From: Haplodiscus bocki
Lineage: Eukaryota
DNA: 64,000 nt
Assembly: GCA_965655095.1 (NCBI GenBank)
Contig: OZ296650.1
Span: 68,758,001-68,822,000, forward strand
Direction: 5' to 3'
The position numbers were made by a program, and so were the translations under genes. Under the pieces are notes generated by a model that was not told the origin of the DNA, ran no database searches, and was given only the letters and a program-made list of their open reading frames with translations. Below, in pieces: positions 11,961 through 53,481 of the stretch (position 1 is the stretch's first letter; each line of letters begins with the position of its first letter).

Positions 11961-11975
11961 ATGAGAAATTTAAAA

Positions 11976-26286: not shown

Positions 26287-27823
26287 TGTCACGACAATCT
26301 TTTGGGCCTAAGTTTTGTGTAGTCTGGCCGCGGAAGATGCCTGCTTCAGGATGAGGATCACTCTGGGAGTCGTCCTCATTCGTTCCCTGGTTTTCCACGT
26401 TTGTGTTCCGGAATGTTCCCGGAACGGTTTCGAAATGCGTATGTATTTGTTGGTTCGAGAGAAATTCGTCTAATTTAGACAGAGCACCCAAAATGCGGGA
26501 CTCTGTCCTGCTGAACTCCTGGGACAGTTTTTTACTGACTCTGCCTTCAATCTCCTCAGAAACTTGTGTAATATATTCCTCGTTAATTCTAGGAACGGAC
26601 GTGTTTCGTGACTGGCCGTTCCTAGGATTTTCCTCTTGTGTTTCTCTTGTAACGGCTGCCAACTTTCGTTTGTTTCTCAACGTTGCCATCTTCTTGAAGG
26701 GAAAATGCTACGCAGTTATGAAGACCGAATTATTTTGTATTTGTTAATAAAGTTGAGATTGTAACAAAAATGTTATTCCCTAAAATAAACAAATAGTCGC
26801 AATCCGTACAGTCAACCGATAATCAAAATGATATTAAGGATTTCTCTTTAGTACTTTCGTTTCTCCTATTTATACCTTTTCCTTGGCGGGAAACATAATT
26901 GTTTACACACCAAGTAAAGGTACAAAGTAGGGAAAAGTACTTTGATCACAATAATTACAAAGGAAAAATGCCGACTCTGGCGGGAAAAAAACAGCTTTAC
27001 CTCTATTTCTTCCTTTACAGACCGCGTCTTTTCCATCTTTCGACGGAAAATATACGGGTCTGATCAGTCAGAAGTGGATATCAAAGTGTTTTTTCCCGCG
27101 CCGACACAATGAATAAACAAATGATCAAAAAGATTTTCCATAAGAGGAAAGTATTATAAAATGCAACAAAATTAGGTAAAATACACTAAAATAATCATAT
27201 AAAATCATAATTACATGCTTGGTAATACTATTGCATCAATTTAATCCACTTTTGGAACGAAACTAGGCTTTTTCTTAACCCGTTCCACGTTTTTACTAGC
27301 TCACGCCTCAATTTGGCTGGAGCGTTCCGTGGCGACTACGTAGCCGCCTGTAGCACTGCCTTCCGCAGTACTACTGAGGAGAATGATTCTGGTGGCTACG
27401 TAGACGTCCCGTGTCCGTCCAAAGTGAAACAGCGCAAAAGCACAGCGGATTGGCTGAAGGTTTTGTGACGTCACCAGATCGGTAGCCACGTAACGCGTAC
27501 GTAACAAAATATTCATTCCTAGCTTAGAGTGGCTGCTAGGTAAGTACGTGTTCGTTACGTAAAAGTTGCTTCTCAATCTGGTTCAGTACACGGGAGTGCT
27601 ACGTATAAAATACGTAGAATTTGTATGAAAATATACTGGGGAGTGATACGTATTTGATACGTATCAACTACATGTAAAAGGAATGAAATAATACTGCAAT
27701 ATTATTATATGAATGGAAATGGAAAAGTCTAAAGTATTGATACAGTTTCTTGTAATTTTCAGGCACTTTGAGGATGTCCTTTCCTTTCTTTATGCTCGTA
27801 GGCTTCGCGGATATACTGCGACA
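26287..27823 (-). repeat. 3' LTR (1537 bp) carrying a duplicate gag N-terminal ORF (26273..26689)
   Basis: Preceded by the PPT; ends TGTCGTGACA. The ORF MATLRNKRK... runs into the flank and stops at 26273. Confidence 0.95.
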
Positions 27824-27835
27824 CTCCCCCTCTTT
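27824..27835 (-). promoter_or_regulatory. Polypurine tract
   Basis: AAAGAGGGGGAG immediately before the TG of the 3' LTR. Equivalent AAAGGAGGAG at 39022-39031. Confidence 0.9.
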
Positions 27836-30745
27836 GTGAAAGGACATTCCCATGGTCAACCTTCTTTTCTGTTTTCGATGCACTCTGCTCATCGATGATT
27901 GTTGCAGATAGAAATCACAATTGTCAGAGTTCACAAGATAACCAATCGCCGGTACCAATTTGAATCATAAATGAAGAACTATTCTCGCCGATCAGAGTTG
28001 ACGAATTCACCAAGAGTACTTTGTCAAGTGACGGAGTACATACGTAGATTCTCCGTAGTTTTCTTTTCGGCTGGGAAATTCTTTGCAGTTTCTGTATTGA
28101 AAGGTAAAATTGATGAAGTTAAGTAATAGTGAGTAGAATTTGATGGCGTTAGTGTTTAATTAAGTCAAGGAAAGCAAAATTTTGAAATGAGGAATCTTTT
28201 AGTTTCGTTCCTCAACGGTTCCTTGAAATATCATGCTGATGTCATTGCTGGCAGACAATTTCATCAAATTTATAATGAGTAAATGTTTAATGACTTAGGC
28301 TTGTAAATCCATCACTTGATAGTCAAGTGTTGCTGTTCCATGTAATGTCTGAGAAAAATGTGATCCTGCATGAGGAGATCACTTCATCCAAGAAGATACT
28401 GTGTCAGCTGTAGGTTCTGCCAGAACTCGTTTTGCCATTTCTATCAAACTCCATGTGCCCCCAAAGAGTATTTTCTTGTGGAGATGGGCGAGGAGAGTCC
28501 GGGAATCTGGTTGGATTTCTGGAATAGCTTGTTGTTGGAGATCATGGCGAAACTGATGAAGATGCGGGGAAGGAGACACACATCGAGGGTTAGGATGTCG
28601 ATGTTGTATGTGGTGCTCCCGCGTTGGCGATCTCCGGGTTTGAGTTGCAGTGTTTCATTTTCTCAGAAATTTTCCGGGAAAAGGACTGGAGGGACAGATT
28701 TTGTCTGAGTGTGTTTTTGGCACCGCTCGACCTCCGCAATGTGAATTTTCAAATCTTCATACCTCATTAGCTTTTGGTTTGCTGGAATAATATGGTGGCC
28801 ATCCATACTTTCCATAAGCTAGTAAACAGTGCGCACCTCTTCATGAAGATGACTTCGTGAGGCTTTTATGTTTTAGCTTAAAATTGTTCTGGGGAACCAT
28901 TTATTCGTCCGGATATCTCCGGGACCCTTCGGATTGACTCGGTTGTGATCCGAGTTTGAAGTTGTTGCTCCCACTTCGGAGGAGGATGTCCGGAAAGGGG
29001 TATTCTAGAAAAATATCTCTCACGGCTACTCTTGAGAATTAGATTCTCTCTAATCTACATTGTGGATTTGTTTTTGGGGCAGTGGTTTGTTATCATCGTT
29101 TTTGCAGGTGATGCCGAATTTGCTCCTAGAGTCCGGAAGAGATGACGTACCGACTGGAGTGGAGACTGATGGTCAGACGCCTAGTATCGCTAGTTGCGGG
29201 CTTCAGTCTGACGTCTCTGAAGTTGTTCACAGTCGTAGTCGAAGTTGGGAGCTAATGGAGCAGGCTTTTGATGATGGTAATATTCATGTTCAAAAGAGGA
29301 GTTTACCGGTATTGTTCCTCATTGGTTCCAGATATCACCTCATTTTTGCCTTTTAGATTAATTCGTCACCGAAACCTGCTGCCACTGTTGTGCATGCCAT
29401 TGGGCATTAGATTATTTGTTTTTGTCGCTCCGTCAGTGTGGTAGAAAAAGCTCAGTTGCCGAATCTTCTAATGAATAGTGGGCATTCCCGTCGGATTTGT
29501 GTTTGGGCAATCAGTTGTGTGTGTGTGAAGTATATTTTATGTTGACAGAATTGAATGAAGTACAGGATCAGCTGCGACAATTTTGTGGTACGTTCTGTAG
29601 AATTTCCGGAATTCTTCCGTATCACTCCGTGTTTTTTCCTGGGTGGAAGCAGTAATGTCGTTGATGTCACTCATACTGGGGTTATCTGGGGCTGTTCCTG
29701 GTTTTTTCTCATTCAGTCTCTTCATTGCCTGTATTGTTTTAGTTGCACACAATATCGTCGAATTGCAGTCTGATAGAGAATGAGTGGAAAATGAGTCTGT
29801 CGACAAGGATTATCCTCAGAAAGTGACATTAGAAATTCACTATTGCAATCACCAATATCCATTGAGAACTAGTAGTCAGAACATCGTTTTTGTTCCAAGA
29901 AAACTGTGAATAGCTTCCAGGAATAGGTACGTGTTTGCTCCATGTCAGTTCCATAACACGTTCCTAGGAATTCCGGAAAGTGTACGTGGGCGTTACGTGG
30001 AACATACTAGGACAGATTGAAAAATTCAATGTCTGTGATTTTCGTTGCAATTCGGCTTCAGGTGATGACGTAGATCATATTTTGTGCTGCGGGGCTTGGT
30101 AGAATTATGGTTTTGGTGCTTCCAATTCGTGTCCCGTTTATAGTTGAAAACATGGTCCGTATCCATTCCGTCATATGTCCCTTCTTTTTTGGAAACTTTG
30201 TGGGCAAACTTCTCGTATGGTGCATAGTATACTCCTAGTCAAATATGTGTGTAATTAGATAGTTTACGAAATCCAGAGGCAGATACACTTTTCAGGAACT
30301 ATGATCGAGGACACTGACATATACAGCTTGTCCATGTCTCATCTCTCACAAGCGTTTCCCAAACAGCGGTGAAGTTGTTTTGTGAGAAGGGAAATATTGT
30401 TATCTCCATTAAATTTCAGCTGTGATGCCGTTAGTCGTTTCTTGGATTTCGTTTTGACATTTCTGGGAGTTTTTGAGGCACAGAACTTGTTTGCTCCTAG
30501 TTTCATTTTCTCGGAACTGTTCCGTAGAGGTTCCGGATTTTGAAGTGAGGTTTCCTTTAATGACGTTGTTCGTCAATCTACATCATTTTTCTATTTTAGT
30601 TGGGGCGTATGCGTGCTTTCATTAGTTTCAGCAGTAGAGTCGTTTTGAATATTAGGTAACTTGAACTATCCACAAATATCTCCAGAGGTTGCTGCCAGAC
30701 AACACATGGGATTGGTGGAATATTCTTCTGTTGGTCTCCGGTCTG

Positions 30746-32337
30746 TCAGTCACTGTTCCGGAGTGAAAATGTGACATTTATAGTTAAGATGTTGGGCTGT
30801 AGCATGGACAGAACCAGATATACTGTCGTGTGCGTCCTGTTCTTGAGGTTTGTTCTTCCAGGGAAGTGGCCTGTTTGCTGCATTGGCTCCAACGTAACAT
30901 CTCTCTGTGGAGTGGTTGGTTTTGCCACATGTCGCACAGGGAGGGTAGAGAGTTCTAGATTTTCTGTCAATTTTGTGGTTGTTGATTTAGAGTCGTTTGT
31001 GTCACTGTTGATATTTCCAGCGTTATCTGGGTTGCCTTCAATTTGTTTTTTGTCCATCACAGTGTTCATCTGAGTCTCATCAGGATATTCCAAACTGTTT
31101 AGCTCCAATTCCCTTTTCAGGTGTGTCACAATCTGTTCATACGTGCCATTCTCCAAGTGGGCGTGGTTTATTGATTTCTTCAGGTGTGGAGGCATTTTGG
31201 CATATATGAATTGGTCAACGATTGCTTGGGCAGCAACTCCGAACGCATCTTTTGCCAATTTCTGGAGTTCGTCCAAAAAATCAATTAACTTCTGGTTCGT
31301 TGGATTGAAAATTAATTGTTGAAATTTTCGTTTTGCCGTAGCCATTGACTGGGGTTTCACGTATTTTCTACGGAACACAGTCGGAATTTCTGCTAGATTC
31401 TCTCGGTTCCGACTGCTGATGTTTCTGAACGTCTGCAGCGCATCACCACGCATGAGAGAAGGGAAGTAGTTCACTTTGTCTTCTTCTGTGAGCTGATTGT
31501 GGATTTTTAAACTCGTTTGGAATAGATCTTCAAACAGTTCAAATTTCTCTGATTTCCCGTCGAATGTTGGCATTGCTGTCGTGGGGGATTTAGGCAGTTT
31601 CGAGATTCTGTTACTGTTGTTATCGATATTGGCAGAATTACTGCTCGTCGCCAATTGCTGAAGGGCCAACAAAATCTGGTCTGCTTCAATTGTCGCAGGG
31701 ATGTTCTCACAGCGAAATTGTGGCTGACTTGTGGGCGCGCCTCCTTTTGTTTTCCTGAGGAAATTCCCGAGGATCAGTAGGGGATCTCTTCTTGAACTGC
31801 TGTCACCATGTCATGGCCATTGCGATTTTCTTCTGTAGCTGCTGTCACCATGTCGGGGCGATAGCGAATCTCTCTTTGAACTCCTATCACAATGTCACGA
31901 CAGTGACGAATTTCTCCTGTAGCTCCTGTCACCATGTCATGACAATCTTTTGGGCCTAAGTTTTGTGTAGTCTGGCCGCGGAAGATGCCTGCTTCAGGAT
32001 GAGGATCACTCTGGGAGTCGTCCTCATTCGTTCCCTGGTTTTCCACGTTTGTGTTCCGGAATGTTCCCGGAACGGTTTCGAAATGCGTATGTATTTGTTG
32101 GTTCGAGAGAAATTCGTCTAATTTAGACAGAGCACCCAAAATGCGGGACTCTGTCCTGCTGAACTCCTGGGACAGTTTTTTACTGACTCTGCCTTCAATC
32201 TCCTCAGAAACTTGTGTAATATATTCCTCGTTAATTCTAGGAACGGACGTGTTTCGTGACTGGCCGTTCCTAGGATTTTCCTCTTGTGTTTCTCTTGTAA
32301 CGGCTGCCAACTTTCGTTTGTTTCTCAACGTTGCCAT
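30746..32337 (-). pseudogene. gag: gag of subfamily A (stop at 31774, continues as ORF 30746..31672)
   Basis: MPTFDGKSEKFELFEDLF...LMRGDALQTF...FRRKY...KLIDFLDELQKLAKDAF capsid-like domain; frameshifted CCHC knuckle near 30900-30935. Confidence 0.88.
31777..31944 (-). repeat. Four in-frame 42-bp repeats, each an LTR-end motif plus a PBS
   Basis: tgtcaccatgtc-type cores at 31801, 31843, 31885 and 31927. Peptide CHDMVTGATGEIRH/CRDIVIGVQREIRY/RPDMVTAATEENRN/GHDMVTAVQEEIPY. Confidence 0.95.
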
Positions 32338-33479
32338 CTTCTTGAAGGGAAAATGCTACGCAGTTATGAAGACCGAATTATTTTGTATTTGTTAATAAAG
32401 TTGAGATTGTAACAAAAATGTTATTCCCTAAAATAAACAAATAGTCGCAATCCGTACAGTCAACCGATAATCAAAATGATATTAAGGATCTCTCTTTAGT
32501 ACTTTCGTTTCTCCTATTTATACCTTTTCCTTGGCGGGAAACATAATTGTTTACACACCAAGTAAAGGTACAAAGTAGGGAAAAGTACTTTGATCACAAT
32601 AATTACAAAGGAAAAATGCCGACTCTGGCGGGAAAAAAACAGCTTTACCTCTATTTCTTCCTTTACAGACCGCGTCTTTTCCATCTTTCGACGGAAAATA
32701 TACGGGTCTGATCAGTCAGAAGTGGATATCAAAGTGTTTTTTCCCGCGCCGACACAATGAATAATAACATAAACAAATGATCAAAAAGATTTTCCATAAG
32801 AGGAAAGTATTATAAAATGCACCAACACTAGGTAAAATACACTAAAATAATCATATAAAATCATAATTACACGCTTGGTAATACTATTGCATCAATTTAA
32901 TCCACTTTGGGAACGAAACTAGGCTTTTTCCTAACCCGTTCCACGTTTTTACTAGCTCACGCCTCAATTTGGCCGGAGCGTTCCGTGGCGACTACGTAGC
33001 CGCCTGTAGCACTGCCTTCCGCAGTACTACTGAGGAGAATGATTCTGTTGGCTACGTAGACGTCCCGTGTCCGTCCAAAGTGAAACAGCGCAAAAGCACA
33101 GCGAATTGGTTGAAAGTTTTGTGACGTCACCTGATCGGTAGCCACGTAACGCGTACGTAACAAAATATTCATTCCTAGCTTAGAGTAGCTGCTAGGTAGG
33201 TACGTGTTCGTTACGTAAAAGTTGCGTCCCAATCTGGTTCAGTACACGGGAGTGCTACGTATAAAATACGCAGACTTTGTATGAAAATATAGTGGGGAGT
33301 GATACGTATTTGATAGGTATCAACTACATGTAGAAGCAATGAAATATTACTGCAAAATTATTATATGAATGGAAATGGAAAAGTCTAAAGTATTGATACA
33401 GTTTCTTGTAATTTTCAGGCAATTTGGGGATGTCCTTTCCTTTCTTTATGCTCGTAGGCTTCGCGGATATACTGCGACA
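31935..33479 (-). repeat. 5' LTR (1545 bp) containing the first 403 nt of gag
   Basis: Direct repeat of 26287-27823. Starts TGTCGCAG and ends TGTCATGACA; gag ATG at 32337. Confidence 0.95.
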
Positions 33480-33891
33480 GTTGGGTTGAACACACTAGTG
33501 ACATGCTGACTGCACTCATGGAAGTTTTCGCGATTTCAGTTACTGTATCATCAAGTTCCAGGGGAATTTTAAGGAACACGGTTTGTTGCCGTCAATAGAA
33601 ATGTTATTCAAATACCTACTGCACATGAGATTCAGCTCTTGTACTTTTCGAGATCCCTTTGAAAGGCAATGTTCGGACAATTGTCGGATTTGCTTGCTGT
33701 TGTGCAATCAGAGAACGGTCGAAAACACTATCAACTTTAAAACTAGTTCAAGTGTAACTTCTGCCGAAATTTTTCGCAAAAACGCTTCATTACAGAACAT
33801 TGAACATGAAGACTACGCAGCCCCTTTTCACGGCCTAGCAACAAGGAAAAAGATGGGTGTGAACAAAAAGCGAAAGCACCGGAGTTCATTA

Positions 33892-34425
33892 CCCGGGTCG
33901 AACTTTTTTGGGAAAACGCCGCTATTTTTCAGGTATAATGGCGTAACGCCGCTAACGCCGTTAACTTACTAGCAAAACGCCGTTAACGCCTTTATACCGA
34001 CAAGGAACGCCGTTAACGCCGTTAACATTCATGTTCAACGCCGTTAACACCGCTATTTTTCCGGTTAAACGCTTTTAACGCCGCTATTTGTCCGGTTCAA
34101 CGCCGTTAACGCCGCTATTTTTCTCGTTAAACGCCGTTAACGCCGCTATTTTTCTGGTTAAACGCCGTTAACGCCGCTACTTTTCCGGTTCAACGCCATT
34201 AACGCCGCTATTTTTCCGGTTCGACGCCGTTAACGCCGCTGTTTTCCCGGTTCAACGCCCTTAACGCCGCTATTCTTTCGGTTAAACGTCGTTAAAGCCG
34301 CTCTTTTTCCGGTTCAACGCCGTTAACGCCGCTACTTTTCCGGTTAATAACGGCTTTTGTGACTAATTTTGACCACCGTTAACGCCCTTATACCTGAAAA
34401 ATGTCGGCCATTATTTCGACCCTGG
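33892..34425. mobile_element. Non-autonomous DNA transposon (MITE-like), TA-flanked, with internal minisatellite
   Basis: TA|CCCGGGTCGAA ... TTCGACCCTGG|TA (11-bp TIR, one mismatch). A related left end, also after TA, occurs at 56206 and in each array unit. Confidence 0.8.
34037..34346. repeat. 31-bp minisatellite, about 10 copies (AACGCCGTTAACGCCGCTATTTTTCCGGTTC/A)
   Basis: Unit starts at 34037, 34068, 34099, 34130 and onward. Confidence 0.95.
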
Positions 34426-34586
34426 TAGTAAAGGCAGTTTCAAAACATCTGTATGATGAGCGTGCTACAACCAGTCAAGTGAGCTAACTCTTTGGTTGGA
34501 AACACGCTTTTGAAAGCAAATGCCACCTAAGGGTTCATGTCATTAACGGAACAGTTTTGGTTTTCACACAAGAATTACTCGGAAGT

Positions 34587-37005
34587 TGTCGCAGCACAAC
34601 TGCGAGGCATGCGGCCAGCCCCTACCAGCCTAAAAGACACCCTAACGCTCAGGAAAAACTCAAACATTACACACTTTTAATCAAACTCTAACTATCATTC
34701 TCGTATGTACTTTTAACTGTTGTGCATATATACGGATACGTATTTATTACGTATCCTTAACAATGCACATATATATGGGTACGTATTTATACGGAACCAA
34801 ACTGATCCGGACTAGGGCGGAACCGTTACGGAACAAACAAATGTTCACAGAGTATTATTGACTTGAGAGGTGCTATTTTTATATTAATATAATTATACAA
34901 ATATTAAATATAAATCCACCTTTCTCTATGAATCCGACGGTTTGATTGATTGCAACGAGTGCAGTTTAATTAGAAATTACGACTAAACTGATGCTACAAG
35001 CCAAACAACTGATTTCAAGTGTATTGACTCTCGGAGTGAATATTTGTTCCGTAAGTGTTCCGTAGCTACTAGTCTGGTGATGTCACAAATACTACTTTTA
35101 CTATGCCGTGCTGTGGTGATTACGGATTGATTCCGGAATGACTCCTCATTTGAGCACAAACTACTACCACTGCTATTGAATAAGGAATTATCCGGAAACG
35201 ACTAGGTGCTACTCGTACAAATGAGGAGTAAACTAGTAGTGCTACTAGTTTATCCTCATTTCCAAAGAGTAAAGACTAATGAACTCTTATTAATAATGAT
35301 GAAGTGAACACGAAATTGGTGAGCATTTATGTTTTTCATGTTGTTCTGCTATTTAAAATCATGCATTTTGTATTTTTTATTTCACTTTTCCTAGCTTAGG
35401 GAATACTTTTCCTTTTTCCATTTCTGGAATATACATTTATAAACAATACGTTAAAAAAAACGTTGTAAACAATACGTCGGCGCAAGAATAGACACTTTGA
35501 TGTCCATCTCTGATGGATTAGGACCGTCCATTTTTCTGTCGAAATAAGAAAAAGGCGCGTCATATGAGGCAAGAGATGGATGGAAAAGTTGTGATTTTAA
35601 ACTTTGATGTTATGATTTATAAAGTACCTCTCCCCATTTGCATTTTGACTTGGCGTGTAAACAATTATGTTTCCCGCCAAGAAAAGGTATAAATAGGAGA
35701 GAAGAGAGTACAAATTTAGAACTTTTCAAAACATTGTAATCTTGACTAGCACTTTGTGGTACTGACGTTACTAACCAGTATCAATATCAGTATTTTTGTT
35801 TCGTTATGGAAAACTGTAAACAGCAATTTGACTTTCCTTTAAGAAGAGGGAATCAAATAATTATCACCGAAAAATACTTTTCTTGTAGAAATGGAAACTC
35901 TTGGAAACAAGAGCGAATTGGCATTAATAAACAAAGAAAATTGTGAGGAACATCATTGCAGCATTTTGGCACAAAACTCGAAAGTTACCAGACCAAAAGA
36001 AGACTACATAACTCAAGTTTCTGAGGAAATTAAGAGAGGAGTGACTAAAAAGTTGTCGCAAGAGTTTAGCAGAATAGAAAACCGCATACTAGGCGCATTA
36101 GCACGTCTTGATGAATTTTTCATGAACCCGTTAATTAAGGGCCATTACGGAATCGCTTCAGAGACGTCCCAGAACGCATATGGCAAAAACCAGATAACTA
36201 ATCGGGACGACTCCCAGATTGATCCTCATCCTGAAGCTGGCATCTTCCACAAACAGACGACGCCAAACTTTGGCCCAAAAGATGGCCATGACATGGTGAC
36301 AGGAAGTCACGAAGAAGTCACTTACTGCTCTCCTAGTACATCTTCAGTCAAGCAGAAAAAGAACCGCTCTACCAGTCAACCGCAATTCCGCAGTGAGAAT
36401 GCCCGTGCGACGATTGAAGCAGACCAAATCCTGTTGGCGCTTCAGCAGTTGGCAAACAACAACAATTCTGCAGTTTTCCATAACAATATTAACAGAATTT
36501 CAAAATTGCCAAGGTCGCTCACAACAACGATGCCCACGTTCGACGGGAAATCTGAAAAGTTCCAGCCGTTTGAAGATCGTTTCCAAACGAGCCTCAAAAT
36601 CCATAATGAGCTGACTGAAGAGGACAAAATCACTAAATTCCAATCTCTCATGAGGGGAGATGCATTACAAACGTTTAAAAACAATATTGGTTCAACCTCA
36701 TAAAATCTGGGAGAAATCCTGGCAGTTTTCCGAAACAAATATGTAGAAGCGCAATCGATGACGACAACAAAGCATATTTTCCAGAAACTTGTCTTCAATC
36801 CAGCAAATCAGTAGTTAGTATTTTTTTTGTTGAACTTCAAAAACTAGGCAAAGACGCATTCGGAAAAGCTGCGCACGCCATCATCGAACAATTCATATAC
36901 GCTAAAATGCCACCACACCTGACGAAATCAATAAATCAGGCTCAGTTGGAAAAAGATAAATTTGAACAGATTGCCACACACCTAGAAAGGGAAATAGAGT
37001 TTTTT
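34587..37005 (+). mobile_element. Diverged subfamily-A element: 5' LTR (34587-36293), PBS and truncated gag
   Basis: Starts TGTCGCAG; ends ATGGCCATGACA|TGGTGACAGGA. ATG at 35891 is again 403 nt inside the LTR end. Gag is homologous to 30746-32337. Confidence 0.88.
35891..37002 (+). pseudogene. gag: gag (ORF 35891..36703 plus disrupted continuation)
   Basis: DYITQVSEEI...KKLSQEFSR.ENRILGAL...GHDMVTG...MPTFDGKSEKF...LMRGDALQTF. Confidence 0.88.
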
Positions 37006-37371: not shown

Positions 37372-39900
37372 TGTCGTTGCAGTCTTCTGAGCCAGAGTTT
37401 TGTGTAGTCTGACTCTGAGAGATGCTTGCTTCAGGATGAGGATCACTCTGGGAGTCGTCCTCATTCGCTCCCTGAATTAGGCATTTAAGCCAAGTGTGTT
37501 CCGCGACGTCGCCAGAGTGGATCCGGAGTGGCGCTGAATTAGCGGGTTCAGAAAGACCTCGACAAGTTGGAAAAGAGCATCTCAAACGCAGCTTCCCGTC
37601 CCACTGAACTCCTTGGAAAACTTTCGTGTTACTCTACCATCAAATTTTTCAAAAACTCGAGTAATACAATCTCTTGTGACCTGGGAACATTTGCTTCGTG
37701 CCAAGTTGCAGCTAGTAAGTACTTCACAATTCCCCTTTTCAGGGCTGCAAGTTGTCGCGCAATTCTCAGAGTTACCATTTTCTACGGAAAAGTGATGAAC
37801 AGCGATTAACAATGAATTATCTCAGTTTAATAAGGAAATCAACTCGGTAACAGTTATAATGAATGTCGCATGAAAAAACGAAAATCGACTGGTTTTTATC
37901 GTTAGCATTATTAACTACAACTGCGTCTCGTTCTTTAATTTCCCCTGTTTTTTTACATAGCGGGAAACACAATTGTTTGCACACCAAGTCAACGTAAAAA
38001 CAGAAACAGGGAAAAATATTCCTACAGAATACAAGATCAAAAGCTGAAACTCTGGCGGGAGATGAACACTTTCCCATCCATTTTTTCCCTCGTAGAACTC
38101 GTCTTTTCTATCTTTCGCCGGCAAATTGACGGACCGAGTCCGTCAGAAATGGACATCAAAGTGCTTCATCCCACGCCGACATCTCAGTTTATAAAAACAG
38201 CTTCTTTCCTCAGAGGGAAAACAGAGAAAACAAAAGCTGGAAAAATTGAGGAGACTCAGGGAGCATATTTTTTTTATAAAAAGTGAGGAAAAAAATTAAA
38301 AGTAATTCTATTCTTTTCGTTCATGTACATTTCATCACCAGATATTTCGTTAGTCTCTGCTCTTTAGGAATGAGGAGAAACTAGTAGCGCTACTAGTTTA
38401 CCCCTCGTTCAAACAAGTAGCGACTAGTTGTTTCTGGACAAATCTGAGGCCATCTATGTAGCAGTTGAATGAAACAGGCTGTGTTCAAATGATGAATGAA
38501 TACGGAGTCACTCCGTAATCACCACAGCACTGCAGCAAGGGATAGTTAAAAGAGTGGAAGTGACGTTGCCAGGCCAGTAGCGACGGAACACGTATGGAAC
38601 AAATATTCAACCCGAGAGTCAAAACACTCTATTTCAGTCAACATACTTATAGCACCAAATTAGTTGAAAGCTCTGTTTTGAACGGCAGTCATTGCAATCA
38701 ATCAAATTAAGTACACTGAAAAGGTGAATTATTATTTAGTATTCAAATAAAAATAATATTATAGAAATAGCACCCTTCAGGTAAAAGTTTTTTTATGAAT
38801 ACTCGTTTGTTCCGTAACCGTTCCTTCCTCGTCTGGATCAGTTTAGTAAAGTCTTCCGTATAAGATACGTTTTAGTATGTATGTACAATAGTTACAAGTA
38901 TGTATGAACACTTTGATTTGATGTTTGATTGAAAGTAAGAAAATTTGAAAATACTTTGAGCATTGGGGTATGTTTCTTGCCGATAGAGGTTAACAACAGG
39001 CTTTGCAGATGTGCTTCGACACTCCTCCTTTGTGGAAAAGACATTCCCATGTTCAAGTTTTTGCTTTTGCCTGCTTGGGGGCGGCGGCGTGGAGGATGGG
39101 CTCGAAGCAGAAGCGATTCGCCGCGGTTCATCAAGGTACAATGTCTTGACATCCGAAGATGTCTCCCATTCATTTACTAAGCTAACCAGCATTGATGGTG
39201 TCGATATATCAGAAAAGTCAAGCACTTCCCGTGGTGTCGGGATGTCATCAATTTTGGGAGGGTCTGTTTGTTCCTCTGTGATGGATGCCGGAGGTTTTGG
39301 ATTGAAGGGTTCATAGGCGGATATAAATCGTTGAGGCTTGGAAGTATCAAGGGTTGCTGCCTGCCATAGCCGTAATGCATTGTCGGTTCATTGGAATTTT
39401 ATTCAATGGTCAAACTCTGTGGCTCCGGAGAAGTTACGGATGATATTGTGCTCACTTTTCTAGCTGAGGCATGGGGTTCCGTCGAGTTGAGGATGTCTGG
39501 TGTTATTTCTGGGTGGGCTGTTTTTTCACAACTGCTCTATATAGACGACAATTGAGTCTGTGGAAAGGGAATCTAAATAATTGACTCGAATCATTGCGCT
39601 GAAAATCAAAGTTTGATTCAAGCTACTGAAATTGATGGAGTGATTTTGAAAAGTGATGAACTAAACAAAATGCAGTTGGTACGGTTCATCAGGTGGGAAT
39701 AGCTTTGAAGTTCCTGTGGTAGCATTAGAAATGATGAAGTGGAGTAACTGACGGTATAAACGAAGTTGATGAGTTGTCTACAAATCACCGAACAGAAAAT
39801 GAGAATGAGGAAGTTTTGCATTACGTTCCTTGATGTTCGATGCTTTGCAGGTGTGCTGCGACAGAAGGCTGTAAAACAACTCATTCGTAGTGTTTTGTGA
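37372..39900 (-). mobile_element. Subfamily-A-related 3' LTR (37372-39021) with PPT and upstream 3' internal region
   Basis: PPT then TGTCGAAG at 39021; ends GCAACGACA at 37372. Decayed ORF from ATG 37778 (...EDDSQSDPHPEA). The pre-PPT sequence matches 27836-27860. Confidence 0.85.
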
Positions 39901-40150: not shown

Positions 40151-40935
40151 TCGTAGCGAAGTTCAATTATCGGGTCTTGTGCAATCATTCGGGAATCACA
40201 GAAAAAGATATTTGCAACATCTATCAGAGCCTTTTTAGCAACTTATCAGTTTATTGGTTCATTGACTACAAAATTTTTTGGTGTCGGTGATATTTTGTGG
40301 ATCATTAGTAGGTTTGGTCAGTTGTAGTTTTGAATTTACAAGCAGACAACTAGAGAAGCTACTTTCGATATTGAAAATTCCCGAATAAATTCCGTGAATT
40401 GATACGGTTACTTTCGGTTTGTTATCAGTGATGTTTCCTCGACTTCTTGTCTGAACAAAGGTAATCGGGATGTTCTTTGTACTGTTTAGTTTTGAAAGTG
40501 ACCTACTTTTTCTGAACCTGATTTAGCCCATTTTCAATTGAATCCATAATCATTCTTATGTTTGTTTCTGTTCAATTGTTGAAATTCACAACGCAATTGA
40601 TCGAACTTTTTAATCCATTGTCAATGACTCCAGTGTGCACAGACTAGGTTTTCAGCCGCGAATGGTCCTGTTCAACGACTCTCGATTTGTTTTTACGACA
40701 AGATTGGAAAAAAACTTCGAAAATAAACAAAAGCTATTTTTCAATCTTCAAAACGCTGTCCTTGCCTTCAGCATCATTAAGAATTCAACTACTATAACAG
40801 ATGGCTTTTGGGATTGTGCGTCTAATTCAGGCCGGCCTTTTCGGGAAGTGAAATGTTTTAACATTTTCGTTCAGATAGAACTAGCTTCAAATTTGATAGG
40901 TCTAAAACGGTTTATTGCTGTCGCAGGCTGCCGCC

Positions 40936-42851
40936 TGTGACGGCATGATCTACTCCGTCAATTACAACGGGTAGAACTCAGTCACACAGGGCTATGCTCT
41001 GCCCTTATTTGAAGACTAATATAATAGAACTATCCTTAATAAACCGCTGGATGAAAACCCCCACCATTTTGAAGTTATGTTCTTATATATACTTATATAC
41101 TAATATATAAATATATATATATATAATCTTACAAATATTTACGTACTCATGTGCAAAATCCATACAAATATCGAAGAAGCTTGTATCATGAAGGAAAGGT
41201 CATAGAAAAATGTTTAAAACACGCAACTTATCTGCAGTCTTATACTCAAATTTGATTGGTCAAAGACAAGCAAGCGTATCAACTGCTGACCAACCAAAAG
41301 CGCTGCTGGAACATGGTCAAAATTGGTCACTGGGACCTAATTTTGACCACTTTGCTCAAAGCGAGTGGTCGTTTTCAAACAAAAGGCGAAATACGGCCAA
41401 ATGAAATCAGAAAGCCATTGTATAAACAGACATAATTAAAAAATGTTGCTATGTACTTATATAAACATATAATTATGTGATTATGAGATATAAAATTATT
41501 TAGTGCTAATAATTATTAAATCCTGAGTGAGAAAAATCATCTGGTCAAAAGACGGTCATAGTGCCCACTTTTGACCACTACATATTAACCTACAGTTAAA
41601 ACCTGTGCATGAAGCTTAATACTAATATTCTTGCCATATTTATTACATTATAACTATATTTAACCATCCATTATATGAGATACGCATGTAAACATGATTT
41701 TATTATCCCTGAACATTTATCCAGTTCCCATGACCATATTTTTGGTGGTCATGGTTTTGCGGCATATATTCTTTGATGTTATTTATATTACTATTTTTAA
41801 AACTGACGTCATGATGATGAAATACATACTTCGGGTTGAACCCTCTTTGATGTTTAATATAAATAGAACCCGAGGACATGACGTCAAAGAAGTGATCCTC
41901 CCAATTGGCCGGCGAAGATGAAGGAAAAGAGACGAACCTAAAGGAAGAATCACCGCCAGAAGAGTTTTTGACTATCCTGAAAACAGTTCACTATAACAAT
42001 CATTTAAGCTGATACAATTTATTTGTGGGTTATCTGTACTGTAGGAGAGAAACTGTCCTCCTAAAAACAGTTGATATTATTAATTTTCGGAACCAACATT
42101 ATCCTTTGTGTCAGTTAAAATCCCTTACAAACTTTGTAGTTTGAAGTATTGATTCACTTTTGTGCTACTGTTAATTTTCACCGTTATTACAATTCAGTTA
42201 TTAAAACAAACATGGTTTCTACTCGTAAGAAGAGACAGTCAAACAAAAGGCTCCTCAGCCAATTAGATGACTTCGATCAAGATATGATTATCGGCAGCAC
42301 TGCAAGCGAGAGGCAAGAAAACGTTGTGGTCGATGAGGGTACTAATGTCCAGGATTTTACCGTTGGTACTTCTAACGTTAGTCCGGTTATCAATAAAAAT
42401 GCAATGAATGTGAAAACATTAGAAAGGTGTTTTAATGAGAGGATTGATAGAGAAATGAACAATATTGTTGATACGGTTGAAGATAGGATACAGAGTGCAA
42501 TTTTGGCCGCCATTGATAACATCGTTGCTCCAAAAATCGAATTAGCAATTAGGTCATTAAATGCATTTTCTGGACGGGACGTGACTAGCGTATCTGCAAA
42601 TTCAGAATGTAGGGAGCATGCGGGAATTGGTGCCTCTTTTGAAAACGCATCTGAAAACAACATCACAATAGGTGTAACAAGTATAAATGATGAGGCTCGA
42701 CGCAACTCCCAAGACGGGGTAAGTGAATTGTCGGTCCCGGGAACACAGTTTGACCGACAATCACACATTCATCACGTGATGACAGGAGGTTCAGAACAGA
42801 TTCACAACCCTCATCACAAGATGAAAGAACCTAGTAATGAGACTCATCACA
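40936..42851 (+). mobile_element. Subfamily-B long LTR (1916 bp) containing ORF MVSTRKKRQSNKRLLSQLDDFDQD (ATG 42212)
   Basis: TGTGA...TCACA termini. The ORF is open for 640 nt to the LTR end, with three CATCAC-ended units near the end. No matching TSD (ccgcc vs attgc). Confidence 0.8.
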
Positions 42852-44200: not shown

Positions 44201-45499
44201 AGTCTTTTTCGTAGCGAGAGATATTTTCAGTCCTTATTGGACGAAGTTTTTCTTACCTGTGACCAGTTTCGGAAACGTTGTATTCGGAACCACAAAGGTG
44301 AGAATATCTTCGCTATCGATGATTAAAGCATCATCTTGGTGTCCAGCAAGATATTAAACATGTTTCAATTTTTTTCACTTGCACTTCCATTCCCTAATGT
44401 AACTTCTGCAACCATGTTTTTCAAGTTTCTCCGTACTCGGACCAACTCAGTGACACTCAGATCAGATTGGGTCATTATTACGCTTTTGTAGCACAATGTT
44501 AGAAAGTTCCGAACACGTAGGCAATAACAAGTGGATATCGGCTTGCTTGTAGTTTTTTGTACAGTGATGAGGCAGTACTGAATTGATCAGACTCACAATT
44601 TTCTTTAGGCTATAGAGGTTAATATTCATGTGGTGTTGCATTGTTCAAAACTTCCACTACAAACACAGCGTTTTTGAAGATTTTTGCAAATGATTTCCCG
44701 CCTTGTCAGTTCTTGCTTATGTCGTCTTCCCCTTCAGAACAGTATTTTTTAAGTAGGTTTGATGTTTTTACTCAAGCGTCTTCAAACTTCCGTGGACTTC
44801 TTTTCAGCTTTGTAATACAATATAACATCTGAAGAACGTACGCTAAACAATTGAAATGTACTGTAGAGTCAATTTCCGTGCAATATGCTGGTTTGGTGAT
44901 GGATCAATTTGATGGTTTTTTGGTATCTGGGCTGCCTCCCTTTTACAAAGTTTTTTCAATCACTTTGCGAAGTTTTGTAATTGTGTCGGAAGATTTTCAA
45001 AATTTTGTTTTCTTTCCAAAACTCAATTTTGGAGACTGGTCTTACTCGCAAGGATCAATCAAGCAAGTAAGCGACTGGTCTTCACCACAAATGTCAACCA
45101 AGCAATTGTGAGATTGGCCTCAATACGACAGTTCCTTCAAAAACGTTAGTACCCGAACTGATAAGTAGCCGTATCTCTGAAATGGAAAATTGATGAAAGT
45201 ATCAAGCACAATAGTTTGGTAGCTTGTTAACAGTTTTTCTGGACGGAACGGCTAAAATTCGTTCTCGCCATTTCATTTTGTTATATCAAAAACAACAAAA
45301 AACGTTTTTTCAATATTTAATTTTCGAATGAAACTGATCATAGTTTTCGTGGAAATTCGGCGCAATTGATATGGAAACTGCCATAGGAGTAATTATTAGG
45401 CTGTATTTTTGAAAAAAAAACACAAACAAACGCGGGGATAATCATGGACAAAAAGGGAAGATACAAGTTCAACCTCAAGTTTTGTCTTCTTTCCAATTT

Positions 45500-47500: not shown

Positions 47501-47934
47501 TTTTGGCTGCAATTTCTAAATGTTTTCGAGAAAAAGAAAATTAACACAAAATGGAGTAGCGTTAAATATGAGTGTTCTGTCTATGATTGACAAGAAATTC
47601 CCAGGCAAAAGTGCTGGAGGCACTTCGTTGTCAAAAACTTGAACAAAAATGCGTGAGATTTAAACTACGGGATCAAATTGAGACCTATTTAGTTTAATGG
47701 GACCCGTGTAGGTTTCAATAACTTCGGGGAAATGACTATTCAATGCGTCATAAAATATTGAATCCTCCGTCGTTGAAATAATTTAGACTATTTCAAGCAC
47801 CAACGTTTCAACAACTTACAAACATCTGTTCCAACAACTTCGATGATGCTATGAGTATCTTTGAGCATCTATCCAACTTGATGCAAATTTACCAAGTGAA
47901 ACAATACTTCTGGTATTGTCGCTAATTAGATAAT

Positions 47935-49100
47935 TGCGAAGAGTTTGAGTTTGCCGATCAAGGTTTCTTTGGTTTATTGAGAAGTCACCTACCTCAACGT
48001 TAACATTACCACTAGTCTCTTTGATCCCATTCAAGTCTGTGTTCGGATTTATTCAACTTGAGGCGGTCATTTCAAGGCTTTCGATTTTTACTGAGAAATC
48101 TCTTTGGTCAGGATCAGGCAAAACGCTCGCTGTATCCAGCGCAGAAGACGCATTGACTGATTTCAACCCTAACGCCAACCTAGGGTCTACTAAACTTTCC
48201 ATCGAAGTCAAGATTGCGTCATGTACTCTGGTTTCGGTCGTTGCCAATAAGTTGTTGACTTCACTGCCAGTACTGCTATTCTCAAGTGTATATATATATT
48301 TACTTGAGAGACGTTCACTGGAGCTCAGTGTAATGGATTTTTCGACGTCTCATCCTTTTCCCTTATGCTCGCTCTTTTTTCAGACTGAACAATATGGTTT
48401 TCTAGTTTATCATGAAATCAGCCTCGAAATCCTCTATTTGGCTGAAAATCCTTTTCTTCTGTTGTCTTTTTGTTCTCGTAGAAACCATAGTTAAGCCAAC
48501 AGATGAAATTAACCAAAGTTTTTCTACAAAAAAAATTCTACAAAGAAGTCGAGAGTAATATTAATTTCAAAAATAACAACAAATCAATTAAGATTTTTGG
48601 GAGCAACTTTTCGTTGATCTCCTTCAAACTGGAATGATTTCTTTTTTCGGTTTATTCGGTGGTCGCTTCTCCTTCATTGACTTTCAGTTCGGCATCCAAT
48701 GACAATATGTCGTTTCATGACGTCAAAACTGCCACTAACACTCTAACTATAACCAACATCGAAGGACATACACAACTTTTACATGACGTCATTGAATATT
48801 TATTAGAAAAAGGAACAAGGTGCGAAAATACTGTAAAAGTTTTTATATGGTTTTCCCCAAACTCAGTATGTATTCTTGAGAAAGTATGCGTAGGTTATTT
48901 GTCGGTCCAGTGTTGAGGGTGGAACATTGTGTTAGTGTGTGCTAATCGCTGTTCTGCAGCTCAATTTCCCCATTAGGTAAAATTACTTATTGTGACCTGT
49001 GTTTGACCATATGACTAGCTGAAACACTGGTCGCGAAGTTTATTTTGACCATTGTTTCCAGAATATTGTCGGAAAAGCAAGATGTCACCAAGTTTATGAT
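47935..49100 (-). mobile_element. Old subfamily-B LTR fragment with decayed LTR-internal ORF (ATG 48488)
   Basis: MVSTRTKRQQKKRIFSQIEDFEAD...ETRVHDAILTSMESLVDPRLALGLKSVNASS...RNLDRQTQ is homologous to 42212-42780. Upstream motifs are shared with 41310-41890. Confidence 0.75.
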
Positions 49101-51633
49101 TTATGGGCTTCTTTAGGGTTTTTTCATGTAGATAGCATGTGGTGTGAATATTTCACCAAATACGATTACTCATCTTGGTTCGCAATCCATATAACATTTG
49201 TACTAAGCGCTATTTTGATTATCGGTGGACAGCACTCAGACAACCTAGTCAAGACTTACTGGTTAGGTCACCGTTCGGTGTTTTGACCGTCGACTGCCTG
49301 CTTTTTTTCTTAGAGGTTGAGTTTTTTTTCTTTCATGGTTCCGCGGTCGCTGAGCAGGATGTTTTATTACTTGGACGTGTTAAATTCATATAAGAAAGAT
49401 TTGAATTCAGCACTGCACTGGCTATATAATTGCATTCTTCCGGTCATAAAATACAAGGAAGAATAATTGCGACGTATTTACCACTTTTACATACTGATGT
49501 AGCATCATGATCAATTGATTGCTTGGTTTAGTCACAGGCCAGTCAGAAGACTGATTGTTGACTTACTTCGCTGCACTGCTTTATTTTTGGCCAGTCAAAT
49601 AGCAGTCATAGATGATTGTTTTGACTTTACAAAATTTTAAAGCGCCTGGCACCGCCATTAGTGGATAAATTGACGTGATATTGAGTTATCAGCCAACAAG
49701 ATTATAGTGGCCCCTGGAAATAAGAGCTCACGGTCCAACGCTGTATCTGTAAGGAGGTTGGGTTTTTCAATGACACTTCTGTTCGTTACATGGATATATT
49801 ATACCGGACATGATCATTTATAGACAAATAGGCATAAATGGAGATCTTTACTTCGGTATAAATCTACTGAGTAGTACTGCATGTAAAAGTTTTAATAGCC
49901 GTTTCGAAGCTGGAATAGGGGCAAATATCCTCTGTTTGACCCGCTGCAAGGTTATTGATACGTGATGTCTTATGTCTGTCGGTCGCATGCGAGCCTGCAA
50001 CAATAATTGAAATTGAAAAATTGGCTCAAAAATAGGATAATTAATACCAATGTTGTGTTTGGAAACTCGTATTCTTCGTTCCTTACTACGGGTGTTTTTT
50101 GACAGGCTGTGTATGAATCTTGGAGCAATATTGCATCAATTCGACCCGTTTTTTCGAAGCATTTCTTTCTCAAAGTTCCTTGAAGTCCAACTTCACTGTT
50201 TCTGCCACTTAGTACTCTAGGGTGTTGCAGTCTCAAGTTATACTGTGTCTCAATTCTCAATACTGCTGAGCGTTCTGATACTGTTCTGATACCGTTGTTG
50301 ACAAAACAAATTGCATACCAAAAGCCCTGCTCGCATCTAAAATATAATCAAAATTTTTAATTAATATGGAAAATGGTAAACCTCATGGTTTTTCAGTTCT
50401 TCAGAGTTGATCGGCTTAAAGAGTTTCATTTTTTTCCTGAATGGTCGGAGAACGTTTTTTTAACTGGGAAATTAACATCTTCTTATTGTAAAGTCGTTTT
50501 CTTGTTTTACCATGGTCTGCCGTTGTTTCAGAAGGATTTAGACTGTTGGTTTCTGTCTTTTAATATAGCTCGCCGAAGTTTTTTTTTGCGGTCCGCTGAC
50601 CTGGACACCGAAGCTTTAGACCAAAAAGTTGCAGAAAAAATTATACTCTATGCACCAAAACAATCTGCTGGTTAAATTAGTTTTGTACCAAAAACTTCCG
50701 GAAAGTTACGATTCGGAAACATTTTGTTCAGCTTGTTCACATGTCTTATAGACCTTACAACCTATAGATCTTGTTCTTCTTTAAGATCTTAAAATTACTT
50801 CAATTAATGATCTCACGTTCTGATACCTGGGAATCAGCTTGTTTATCAACAGTTTGTTTTGTTTCTTTCCTCGGTGAACTTTCGAATTATATCAGTTTTT
50901 ACAATAGAACGGCCAGTTTTGTCAATTACTATTAAATTTGTATTTTTTTCAAATTTCCGTCCGAAGTTTTTTTAGAAAAGGATCAACGATTTGATGGACG
51001 ATTTGGTGCCAATCCGAAACTTTCCATCTTCCATTGCATCTGAAAGTACTACGCTTTTTTAGAACAGTTACCTTTCTCTGCAGTCTCCGTTCACATTGAA
51101 ACTAATCACAATAGTAACTGTTAAGTGTAGAATTTTCAACACAGGATTCTAACTCAAAGTTTGCATTCTGTGCAACTGTTGATTATCACATCCAATTTTT
51201 TTATTACCTTCACAGACCTAACCCAGATCAATATTCTCCAAAAGAGCTATTTGTTTCAACGAAAACCGCCTAATAACTTGAAGGCTCACACTAAAATGTT
51301 TCTGACTGAATGGTTGCGGACTTTTTGCTTAAAAATTGGATACTGACTCTATGGGAGTTTACTAACTAGATTTCAGCGTTTCTTATCTTTTGGTCCTTAG
51401 TATCAAGTTTGATCCAACGGAAAAATACATGAATTACCCCAAGTTTTCATAATTTGTCATTTCTGAACCCATGGTGAACGTTCTGGCCGCGAGCTGTGGA
51501 TTGGTTTTTGAAGAACAGGTGTCACTGGAAAATGGTGTTACAGCAATTTCTTCAGCGATTTCAAACGCCAAGGTGAACAATGACTGTCTAAGTTGTTGTT
51601 TTTTTTGAAAAAAAGTCCACTGAATTAAACATG

Positions 51634-53481
51634 TGTCATGCCCGCATGAGGGAAGCATGAGATATCTACATATCCTTAAACTTACGGTATGTCATATATG
51701 TATGAAGCCATTATCATTTTTAAGAACTTAATGAAATTTCTGTAGCCAAAATCGCATAGAACTATAAATGCCATTGTGTTCTACTACCCCCCCCCCCCCG
51801 ACATAAACGTGAATTATGGAATTATGTACCATGTAAGCAACATTTGTATTATGTAGAAAAAATTGCTGAGCATATAAAAGCATCTTTTTCCCATCTAAAA
51901 CCAGTTTTCTAGAACTACGAGATGAAAATGACAGATTCCGATGGAGGCTCAAAGTAACCGGAACTGACGTAAAAGACCCCGGAATGCTCCAGCCGGAACA
52001 ACATAAGCCAGTACAAGTACCCTCTGTAGCGGCCGGACTAATGGGATAAATAGAGAGGCGGAATACATTTTCATTGGGAAACATCGGTCTGATGTTTCCC
52101 TGTACTATTTCATTCCGAACAGACGCACAGTATAAAATTGTTGAGCAGAGAGTTTTTACTGACATTTAAAAGCCTCTTAGTCATGACGGAATGGATTAAT
52201 TACGGAAACAAATTTCATTGTTTCACATCCAACTGGTGTAAACTTCCGACAATGCTTTTACCATAGTTCTAAAATTCCATCAGTTTTCTTCCAAACGATG
52301 AAAACCTCTTGTACAGACTGCCAGATAATTTAAAATACATTTCTTTTCATCGATAGGATAACAATTGGTCAGAAAAAAAGTGCTATTGTCAAATCTCATC
52401 AATTGGTTGATAACACTTTTCTTTGATAAGTGTTATTTATCATTTTTTATCCACACTAAGCAATAATAACTCAACCGTCCCACTCATAAACTACAGCGGA
52501 ACACTGATGGGTGCCATCAGTAAAGTACATCGGAATTCATCCAATTTAGGCATGAAAAGCTACTAGACAAGAGAAAATAGGATTACAAATAGACGAAATG
52601 ATGAATCCAGTGGAAGCTAAAATAGCCTGAAAATGACGTAAAACATATTGAGAAAATTCAGGGCACAGAAAAAAAGCCATCATTTCCCTAAATTTAACCC
52701 CGTACAATGACTTTACGTATAATATTGATGTATTTAGATATAATCCACGATTTTGAATTTATGCAAACTTATTGCATCAAATGTGCATAATTAGCATGTT
52801 GTACGAAGCGTAACCGCCATTTTTGCGGTGGATATGCGTTCACACTTTAATTAGTTAGTGAGTGATATAACTAACACGCCAATGAGAAATCTCTGATGGT
52901 AAGAATTGAGTCTTACCATCGGTCATGTTACCACGCAAATCCACCGAAAACCACCGCAGTTTTGGTGCAATTAGTAGGGAAAAAAATTTTCACCTTTGCA
53001 AGAACGTACACGTCTTACCAACACAGATTGATCCTAGTTGATTTAGCTTACATGGAACCGCAACTGAAAATTCATCATTTTCCATCGACTTTTGTAAACT
53101 CGCTCGCATTCAGACCAACGCTTTTTTCAAATTCCAAAATACATCTAATTTCATCGTAAATTCAAGTCTTGAAATTTGAATGCTTGATTCTGACTCCTAC
53201 CGAAAACTGAGAAGCGAAAAAGGTATAACACAGACTCAGGCTGCACAATGAGTAAAAATGGTAGTGTTGAATGCAACAGACCCGTTAATTCATCGGAAGA
53301 TATTGAGGGAGAAGGTCCTGAAAGTCGTACTTTGACCCAAGAATTGGACAGCGAACAAATCAAAGTGTTCATCGCCTCACTAAGACTACAGCTAGACGAA
53401 TTGACTCGACTGGTTTAGGGGGCCATTACCCCAAGACTGATGACTGTACCACTTTTTTTACAGCCGCACATCACCCCGACA
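51634..53481 (+). mobile_element. Solo LTR (subfamily C, 1848 bp) with 5-bp TSD ACATG and a decayed internal ORF (53180-53481)
   Basis: TGTC...GACA termini; ACATG at 51629-51633 and 53482-53486. ORF MLDSDSYRKLRSEK...TLTQE...EQIKVFIASLRLQLDELTRLV runs toward the LTR end. Confidence 0.85.

Follow-up and report, generated by a model that had tools for sequence, protein, structure and literature searches.

The 64,000-nucleotide stretch of Haplodiscus bocki DNA analysed here (contig OZ296650.1; referred to as the window) contains LTR retrotransposons that are most probably Ty3/gypsy-type elements, in which the Gag frame starts 100-213 codons before the 3' end of the LTR and is translated through the PBS, and in which the border between LTR and interior is mobile.

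Architecture of the elements in the window

Seven LTRs with an internal gag ATG were present, at 26689, 32337, 35891, 37778, 42212, 48488, and 53180 (window positions), as stated in the preliminary description, which had placed an ORF start 300-640 nt inside each of them. On remeasurement, the ATG was located 403 nt from the LTR end at the first three sites, 407 nt from it at the fourth, and 640, 554, and 302 nt from it at the remaining three, respectively. These LTRs belonged to four families (A, including A2 and A3; B; C, which is related to B; and D) instead of the three subfamilies initially proposed (Table 1). The internal ORF, which had been described as open to the LTR end, was indeed open at 26689, 32337, 35891, and 42212, but contained stops in A3, C, and D.

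Table 1. Positions of the retrotransposon features in the window
Feature	Position	Strand	Description
A 3' LTR	26287..27823	-	Second gag-start copy (ATG 26689) runs into flank; TSD CCAAC at 26286-26282
A interior remainder, non-coding	27824..30748	-	Ends in PPT AAAGAGGGGGAG; without pol
A Gag CA-like core and zinc knuckle	30749..31810	-	Pfam DUF1759, Retrotrans_gag
A junction array	31777..31944	-	Four in-frame 42-nt "LTR-end + PBS" units; LTR terminates at the first unit
A PBS TGGTGACAGGAG	31923..31934	-	Complement of host tRNA-Leu(CAG) 3' end; in-frame M-V-T-G
A LTR-embedded gag start	31935..32337	-	ATG 32337, then 134 codons to LTR end
A 5' LTR	31935..33479	-	1545 bp, TGT..ACA; TSD CCAAC at 33484-33480
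A2	35891..37002	+	Gag start 403 nt inside LTR; LTR end 36293, PBS at 36294
A3 3' LTR	37372..39021	-	Decayed gag start 37778, 407 nt from LTR end; LTR end 37372
B solo LTR	40919..42851	+	1933 bp, TSD ATTGC
B gag start in LTR	42212..42851	+	213 codons: basic tip, long helix, linker; open to LTR end
Relic LTR-end/PBS junction in B LTR	42770..42788	+	Two changes versus live junction; aligned with C LTR ends, 75 nt short of B end
C solo LTR	47935..50002	-	2068 bp, TSD ATTAT; old, B-related; decayed gag start 48488, 554 nt from end
D solo LTR	51634..53481	+	1848 bp, TSD ACATG; putative gag start 53180, 302 nt from end

The elements had the general organization of LTR retrotransposons: direct LTRs with TG..CA ends and a short TSD, a PBS after the 5' LTR, and a PPT before the 3' LTR. 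The two LTRs of A were 97.7% identical over 1545 nt, and its TSD (CCAAC, corresponding to GTTGG on the plus strand) was found on both sides. Since the interior is without pol, A was regarded as a gag-only, non-autonomous element. A2 was truncated and retained an open frame of 270 codons, reaching the DUF1759 core, while in A3 a PPT (AAAGGAGGAG) was located immediately upstream of the 3' LTR. The copies of C and D that we checked in the genome (13 of each family) were all solo or 3' LTRs, and none of them was a 5' LTR joined to gag; the putative gag-start frame of D, decayed in the window copy, was largely uninterrupted in several copies from the genome. No match was obtained when the window was scanned with Rfam and for tRNAs, nor in a Pfam search with the ORFs of the neighbouring tandem repeat and the inter-LTR DNA.

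Continuity with gag and purifying selection

Judged from its sequence, the ORF inside the LTR encodes the genuine N-terminus of Gag and is continuous with CA-NC in genome copies of A and B. Seven of the 30 A copies fetched contained a single unbroken ORF that began at the LTR ATG and extended through all of gag (517-519 aa), and three more had an ORF of 501-506 aa. Two genome copies of B with a PBS after the LTR carried a 595-aa ORF running from the LTR ATG through the PBS into gag. The order in these continuous ORFs of A and B was LTR ATG, LTR end, PBS (read as D/H-M-V-T-G), CA-like core, and zinc knuckles; the junction GAC ATG GTG ACA (D-M-V-T) was in frame in both A and A2, as previously noted. 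In the window, the N-terminal part of A was separated from the CA-like core by a break of frame close to 31777; this break was found only in this copy, and the frame was continuous across the site in other genome copies. Among the best 120 database relatives listed (76-100% identity), nearly all spanned the full length of Gag, including the N-terminus.

Using pairs picked among copies with intact ORFs, the omega value of the LTR-encoded part was 0.24 between A and A2 (p=2.6e-9; control frames, 0.81 and 1.05) and 0.25 between B and a 77%-identical variant (p=2.3e-9; control frames, 0.94 and 1.17). The dN/dS analysis that the preliminary description had called for thus revealed frame-specific purifying selection in both families, and its own ground for withdrawal, a lack of purifying selection on the LTR-internal ORF, did not apply.

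AlphaFold predicted a single long helix in the N-terminal pieces of both A and B (pLDDT > 90), in agreement with the basic start and coiled-coil-like segment first read from the sequence. According to these models, the N-terminal piece has a basic tip, followed by one long helix and a linker that is disordered; the helix probably functions in multimerisation or targeting. A look-up of the B piece in the ESM Atlas yielded no useful match. The Gag proteins of A and B shared 43% identity over CA-NC, whereas no homology was detectable between their N-terminal pieces (hhalign probability of 0.8%), and a common origin of the architecture in A and B is, therefore, not proven.

Alternatively, the LTR-internal frame may be untranslated, with Gag starting at the junction ATG (..CA + TGG..) or downstream and the open frame being a by-product of recent common ancestry. 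An in-frame ATG is always created at the junction, and the solo LTRs of D carried no frame-specific signal in either codon-position diversity or dN/dS, as expected from this explanation. However, the low omega values, against control frames near 1, were obtained in two family pairs in which 36-61% of synonymous sites differed (pS), and the ATG and gap-free frame were retained in variants down to 39% protein identity. The gag start codon also lies in a strong context (A at -3 and G at +4 in both gag start codons) with in-frame stops closely upstream, and the conserved helix is a high-confidence prediction. We consider it very unlikely that the frame is untranslated.

Equally improbable, in our estimation, is that the LTR frame is chiefly an independent accessory gene comparable to MMTV sag or HIV nef, with solo or 3' LTRs as the source of its expression and its continuity with gag in the 5' LTR as a secondary feature. 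In each LTR, a putative promoter block is indeed accompanied by an ATG with 100-213 open codons, and public protein sets include hundreds of short sequences that start in LTRs of this kind and continue into the flank, although these are gene-caller predictions and not expression evidence. On the other hand, the frame lacks a dedicated stop codon and ends at random in the flank of 3' and solo LTRs, whereas in-frame continuity with gag is held across families and across indel-rich junction arrays, the units of which are all multiples of three. In the established mechanism of retroviral reverse transcription, U5 is inherited from the 5' LTR copy only, and, thus, the copy translated as Gag is accessible to selection.

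LTR limits and mobility of the LTR/interior border

The LTR ends were fixed by TSD, PPT, PBS, the TG..CA ends, and genome-wide repeat limits; the preliminary description had also cited TSDs, the PPT, and the PBS as independent markers of the boundaries. Over 11-12 nt, the PBS was complementary to the 3' terminus of a tRNA-Leu(CAG) present in this genome. As several PBS-like motifs occur near the border, a single PBS is insufficient to define an LTR end. The recurrence of these motifs would also be compatible with misplaced limits (internal sequence included via segmental duplication or gene conversion, with the true U5 ends upstream of the ATG), an explanation that is hardly credible because four independent 5-bp TSDs (CCAAC in A, ATTGC in B, ATTAT in C, and ACATG in D) adjoin the proposed ends, thousands of genome copies end exactly there (all copies of B at 42851), and the B, C, and D solo LTRs terminate at these positions next to unrelated flanks.

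With the ends placed in this manner, the 3' ends of the LTRs differed among subfamilies by one to three decayed "LTR-end + PBS" units, from which it follows that the border moves by PBS turnover; on this comparison of sequences, the LTR/interior border shows itself to be mobile. The TSD-anchored ends of the C LTRs aligned at a relic junction inside the B LTR, and the homology of ORFs arising in solo or 3' LTRs stopped after the first, second, third, or fourth junction unit. Junction units that had been absorbed into the LTR carried mutated PBS codons.

Classification

Assigned from pol domains, the clade is Ty3/gypsy and not BEL/Pao. The pol of a B-type element elsewhere in the genome (locus L059) contained, in order, a weak match to gag-asp_proteas, RVT_1, RT_RNaseH, Integrase_H2C2, rve, and Integrase_p58_C, which is the PR-RT-RNase H-IN arrangement of Ty3/gypsy (Metaviridae); the RT of this single fetched copy was fragmented. 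BEL/Pao (Belpaoviridae) was first suggested by DUF1759 matches and was dropped because the B-type pol domains are gypsy-like: Peptidase_A17, DUF1758, and DUF5641 were not found in the pol ORFs of this element. Only the gag of A passed the threshold for DUF1759 (30 bits), that of B remaining below the cut-off.

Proposed expression and its implications

A block containing TATAAATA, approximately 185 nt upstream of the ATG, was conserved between A and A2, which otherwise differed by approximately 30% in this comparison, and in A no ATG was found between the TATA box and gag ATG. A motif scan of the LTRs placed no canonical poly(A) signal, and none was conserved. We infer that a TATA-type promoter upstream in the 5' LTR would produce a genomic RNA with the LTR ATG as its first AUG, the gag start being situated in what must be R/U5. 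Translation would then cross the LTR end and the PBS, read as Met-Val-Thr-Gly, and proceed to the capsid-like core and zinc knuckles. The LTR-encoded piece is a genuine, selected part of Gag. Owing to its location in the LTR, this N-terminal piece recurs in the 3' LTR, and each solo LTR retains a copy of it. Junction units (LTR end and PBS) are repeated in tandem and in frame; once an upstream PBS copy has decayed, the following one would take over priming and the unit thus bypassed would join the LTR. Junction arrays may be a simple route for LTR growth at the 3' end, the steps of which are datable.

A more far-reaching proposal, which we regard as speculative and rather improbable, is that in-frame duplication of the U5 end and PBS, followed by decay, repeatedly moves gag into the LTR, and that the thousands of solo LTRs act as promoter and start-codon cassettes for the N-terminal helix of Gag, which would be produced by itself or as a fusion with host sequence and would interfere with or regulate Gag assembly as a built-in copy-number control. 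The preliminary description had similarly suggested that each 3' or solo LTR might combine a promoter with a coding piece for a truncated, possibly regulatory Gag. If expressed, the solo LTRs would supply N-terminal Gag fragments and chimeric starts for host genes on a very large scale.

The usual assumption of a non-coding LTR, with gag beginning only downstream of the PBS, appears to fail for these elements. Searches for gag that mask LTRs or are confined to the interior would shorten Gag by 100-213 residues, and gene callers applied to solo LTRs will yield thousands of spurious short proteins; the LTR-encoded N-terminal piece alone matched 1140 clusters in a 50%-identity protein library. 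A translated PBS would, furthermore, make the identity of the tRNA primer and the protein sequence interdependent.

Comparison with known systems

A full-text literature search, which is weak evidence because its coverage did not extend to older subscription papers, returned no paper on a large gag segment inside an LTR, and a survey of BEL/Pao elements did not treat gag starts. In Ty1 and Ty2 of Saccharomyces cerevisiae (Pseudoviridae), the 5' LTR contains the ATG of Gag (TYA), preceded by the transcription start, and the translated gag frame includes the PBS. The elements of A and B are similar in that the gag ATG is upstream of the LTR 3' end and the PBS is part of the gag frame. Ty1, which had been cited from the outset, is, thus, a fair precedent for the overlap; however, its LTR contributes only about a dozen codons, against the 100-213 found here, which include a predicted helix. 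Ty1 also differs in being copia-type and primed by tRNA-iMet, whereas the present elements, of gypsy type, use tRNA-Leu(CAG) as primer, and we know of no junction arrays in Ty1.

Members of Ty3/gypsy with very long LTRs, such as Ulysses and Osvaldo of Drosophila, resemble these elements in LTR length (1.2-2.1 kb), PR-RT-RH-IN order, and a gag with zinc knuckles; to our knowledge, a gag start hundreds of nt inside the LTR has not been reported for any of them. The glyco-Gag of murine leukaemia virus similarly has an extra N-terminal segment upstream of the canonical capsid-forming part of Gag. That extension is encoded downstream of the PBS, in the leader, and starts at CUG as an alternative isoform, whereas the extension described here is located upstream of the PBS, inside the LTR, and is apparently part of the main frame. 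Protein-coding sequence within an LTR is also known from MMTV sag and the overlap of HIV nef; unlike the LTR-encoded piece of A and B, both of these are U3 ORFs that are read from the 3' LTR and contribute nothing to Gag.

Boundaries of the LTRs and position of the start codon

LTR-retrotransposon pieces were clustered in the part of the window with higher G+C (from ~0.30 to ~0.40 from ~24 kb onward); the assembly is eukaryotic and 1.5 Gb in size. The LTR of element A starts with TGTCGCAG and finishes with GTGACA, the two copies being 97.7% identical over 1545 nt, and a AAAGAGGGGGAG tract directly precedes the 3' LTR. Every genome match to the LTR of family B stops at 42851. An ATG had been placed 300-640 nt inside these LTRs in the preliminary description, and the distances agreed with the fixed ends (see table). 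The accompanying claim of an open frame up to the LTR end was borne out for A, A2, and B, and failed for the window copies of A3, C (related to B), and D, in which the frame is broken. Stop-free frames of 134 or 213 codons have a chance of ~1e-4 or ~5e-7, respectively (our own arithmetic, local base composition).

Positions of LTR elements, solo LTRs, and other repeats in the window
Feature	Position	Strand	Flanks (both sides)	ATG	ATG to LTR end (nt)	Frame to LTR end
Element A	26287-33479		CCAAC			
A, 5' LTR	33479..31935	minus		32337	403	open
A, 3' LTR	27823..26287	minus		26689	403	open
A2, LTR end followed by interior	36293			35891	403	open
A3, 3' LTR	39021..37372				407	broken
B, solo LTR	40919-42851		ATTGC	42212	640	open
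C, solo LTR	50002..47935	minus	ATTAT		554	broken
D, solo LTR	51634-53481		ACATG		302	broken
Tandem duplication	11754-16010					
Minisatellite	33944-34377					
Tandem repeat	54155-64000					

Other repeats were also observed. A 2.13-kb unit is duplicated in tandem (99.1% identity) in the AT-rich part, and a minisatellite of 31-bp units (~14 copies, 74-86% alike) lies just beyond the 5' end of A. The terminal tandem repeat (unit of 2577-2578 bp, ~3.8 copies up to the window end, 99.9% identity) contains a 160-bp part 88% like 33890-34048, and its ~100-aa ORFs had no match in Pfam. The B LTR carries a (TA)n-rich stretch near LTR positions 166-202 (within 40919-41140).

Continuity with gag and selection

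In the window, the reading frame of A is broken near 31777. Among 30 fetched LTR-to-interior junction copies of A, seven carried a single ORF of 517-519 aa from the LTR ATG to past the zinc knuckle, with Pfam matches to DUF1759 and Retrotrans_gag at residues 259-389, and another three carried an ORF of 501-506 aa. A2 of the window has 270 open codons that start at the LTR ATG, cross the LTR end, and reach the core also found in A. In B copies with TGGTGACAGGA after the LTR, the frame continues past the junction and encodes a Gag of 595 aa that contains two CCHC knuckles. A word-indexed protein search with Gag returned 2285 relatives, and nearly all of the best 120 (76-100% identity) covered 92-100% of the query, N-terminus included. 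The LTR-internal frame, previously described as part of ORF1, was supported as the start of gag, unbroken into the capsid-like core and zinc knuckles (CA-NC) in genome copies of A and B.

Selection was estimated by the Nei-Gojobori method on codon alignments, with the same estimate in two shifted frames as controls. For the LTR-encoded piece (from the LTR ATG to the LTR 3' end), A versus A2 gave an omega of 0.24 over 131 codons (pS and pN of 0.61 and 0.25; Fisher p = 2.6e-9; controls, 0.81 and 1.05), and B versus a 77%-identical variant on the ENA contig L059 gave 0.25 over 190 codons (p = 2.3e-9; controls, 0.94 and 1.17); the CA-NC part gave 0.09-0.10 in both pairs. Since these values were frame-specific, with controls near 1, the LTR-internal ORF of A and B has been under purifying selection, the absence of which had been proposed as evidence against a coding LTR. 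Only three parts of the A and A2 LTRs were alignable: a short block, a second block with a TATA box at its end, and the coding part. No frame-specific signal was found in the old D solo LTRs, as expected where copies decayed after insertion, and D is therefore regarded as consistent with, but not proof of, this architecture; in several D copies, the frame is still largely open, and its phase is the one that would lead into D|M-V-T.

Neither Pfam nor the ESM Atlas gave a named family for the LTR-encoded piece, and sequence homology between the A and B pieces was not detectable. AlphaFold predicted one long helix (pLDDT >90) in each, at 37-83 in A and 57-118 in B, and the predicted common plan is a disordered basic tip, a long helix, and a disordered tail toward the junction.

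Primer-binding site and transcription signals

The genome contains many tRNA-Leu(CAG) genes with the 3' end ..CACTCCTGTCA, the complement of which, with CCA added, is TGGTGACAGGAGTGGG. Because this complement was matched over 12 nt in A and 11 nt in A2 and B, the primer-binding site (PBS) is genuine, and would be read in the gag frame as M-V-T-G. The tRNA-Leu(CAG)-like 3' end had 1340 forward matches in the genome, and very large tandem arrays of it were found at G000:C1:161094516-161137553 (period of ~424 bp) and C11:13120318-13172453, the arrayed species being the same as the primer of these elements.

Some 185 nt upstream of the ATG, A carries a block with TATAAATA at its end, which A2 shares in near-identical form; conservation is lost between this block and the ATG. 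Downstream of the TATA box in A, the first ATG is that of gag, and the A and B start codons are each preceded by A at -3 and followed by G at +4. Transcription may therefore begin from a TATA-type promoter block upstream of the LTR ATG; no canonical poly(A) signal could be placed.

Moving border of the LTR

Near the junction, Gag proteins contain in-frame units (one to five of them, 11-14 codons long) that are each a copy of the LTR end plus PBS (..H-H/D-M-V-T-G..). The B N-terminal piece matched 1140 clusters in a representative protein library, most of which were short ORFs that open within a 3' or solo LTR and extend into unrelated flank. In the majority of clusters, the tails are homologous only as far as the end of unit 1; in others, homology persists to the end of unit 2, 3, or 4. 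MVTG is the reading at the live border, whereas the PBS codons of units within the LTR are altered (MPSG, VVSG, MASG, VMTG, and others). Ends of C-family LTRs anchored by target-site duplications align at 42775, 75 nt inside the similarly anchored B LTR, and a relic junction, two bases off the live one, sits exactly at this point. As U5 is established to end where the tRNA primes, priming that moved to a PBS copy further downstream would make the skipped unit part of both progeny LTRs. Such a shift explains why LTRs extended into gag in small steps; by itself, it leaves the presence of the helix in the LTR unaccounted for.

Class and autonomy of the elements

In the B-type copy on L059, gag is followed by a weak aspartic-protease match, RVT_1, RT_RNaseH, Integrase_H2C2, rve, and Integrase_p58_C, with no match to Pao-type families, a domain pattern that assigns this pol to Ty3/gypsy. 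A second, inverted gene of 640 aa lies ~2.5 kb beyond this pol (L059:14830-16752), and its length suggests another gag of a nested or adjacent element. A and B Gag were 43% identical over CA-NC. Since no pol of A was found in the window, and no long frame past gag in a second region with the same layout (L031/L032, G000:C4:34009000-34028999), A is a gag-only, non-autonomous element with an intact and selected gag; its interior includes ~2.9 kb of non-coding sequence. Genome candidates for A numbered in the thousands at first look (5326 for the junction query). LTR-to-gag junctions of A were also spaced regularly, 5641 bp apart in a run of three (G000:C5:108818673-108830855; loci L023, L028, and L029) and 7990 bp apart elsewhere (G000:C4:34012649-34021532), suggesting tandem LTR-interior-LTR-interior arrays with shared LTRs.

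Comparison with known systems

The start of gag inside the LTR is solid at the sequence level. Our literature search, the coverage of which did not extend to older papers on transposable elements, found no description of this architecture. The nearest precedent is Ty1, whose gag begins only a few codons before the LTR end and has a translated PBS; a gag start inside the LTR and a PBS in the gag frame are common to both systems. On the other hand, the LTR overlap in the H. bocki elements is ten-fold larger and includes a predicted folded element, and these elements are gypsy-type with junction arrays.
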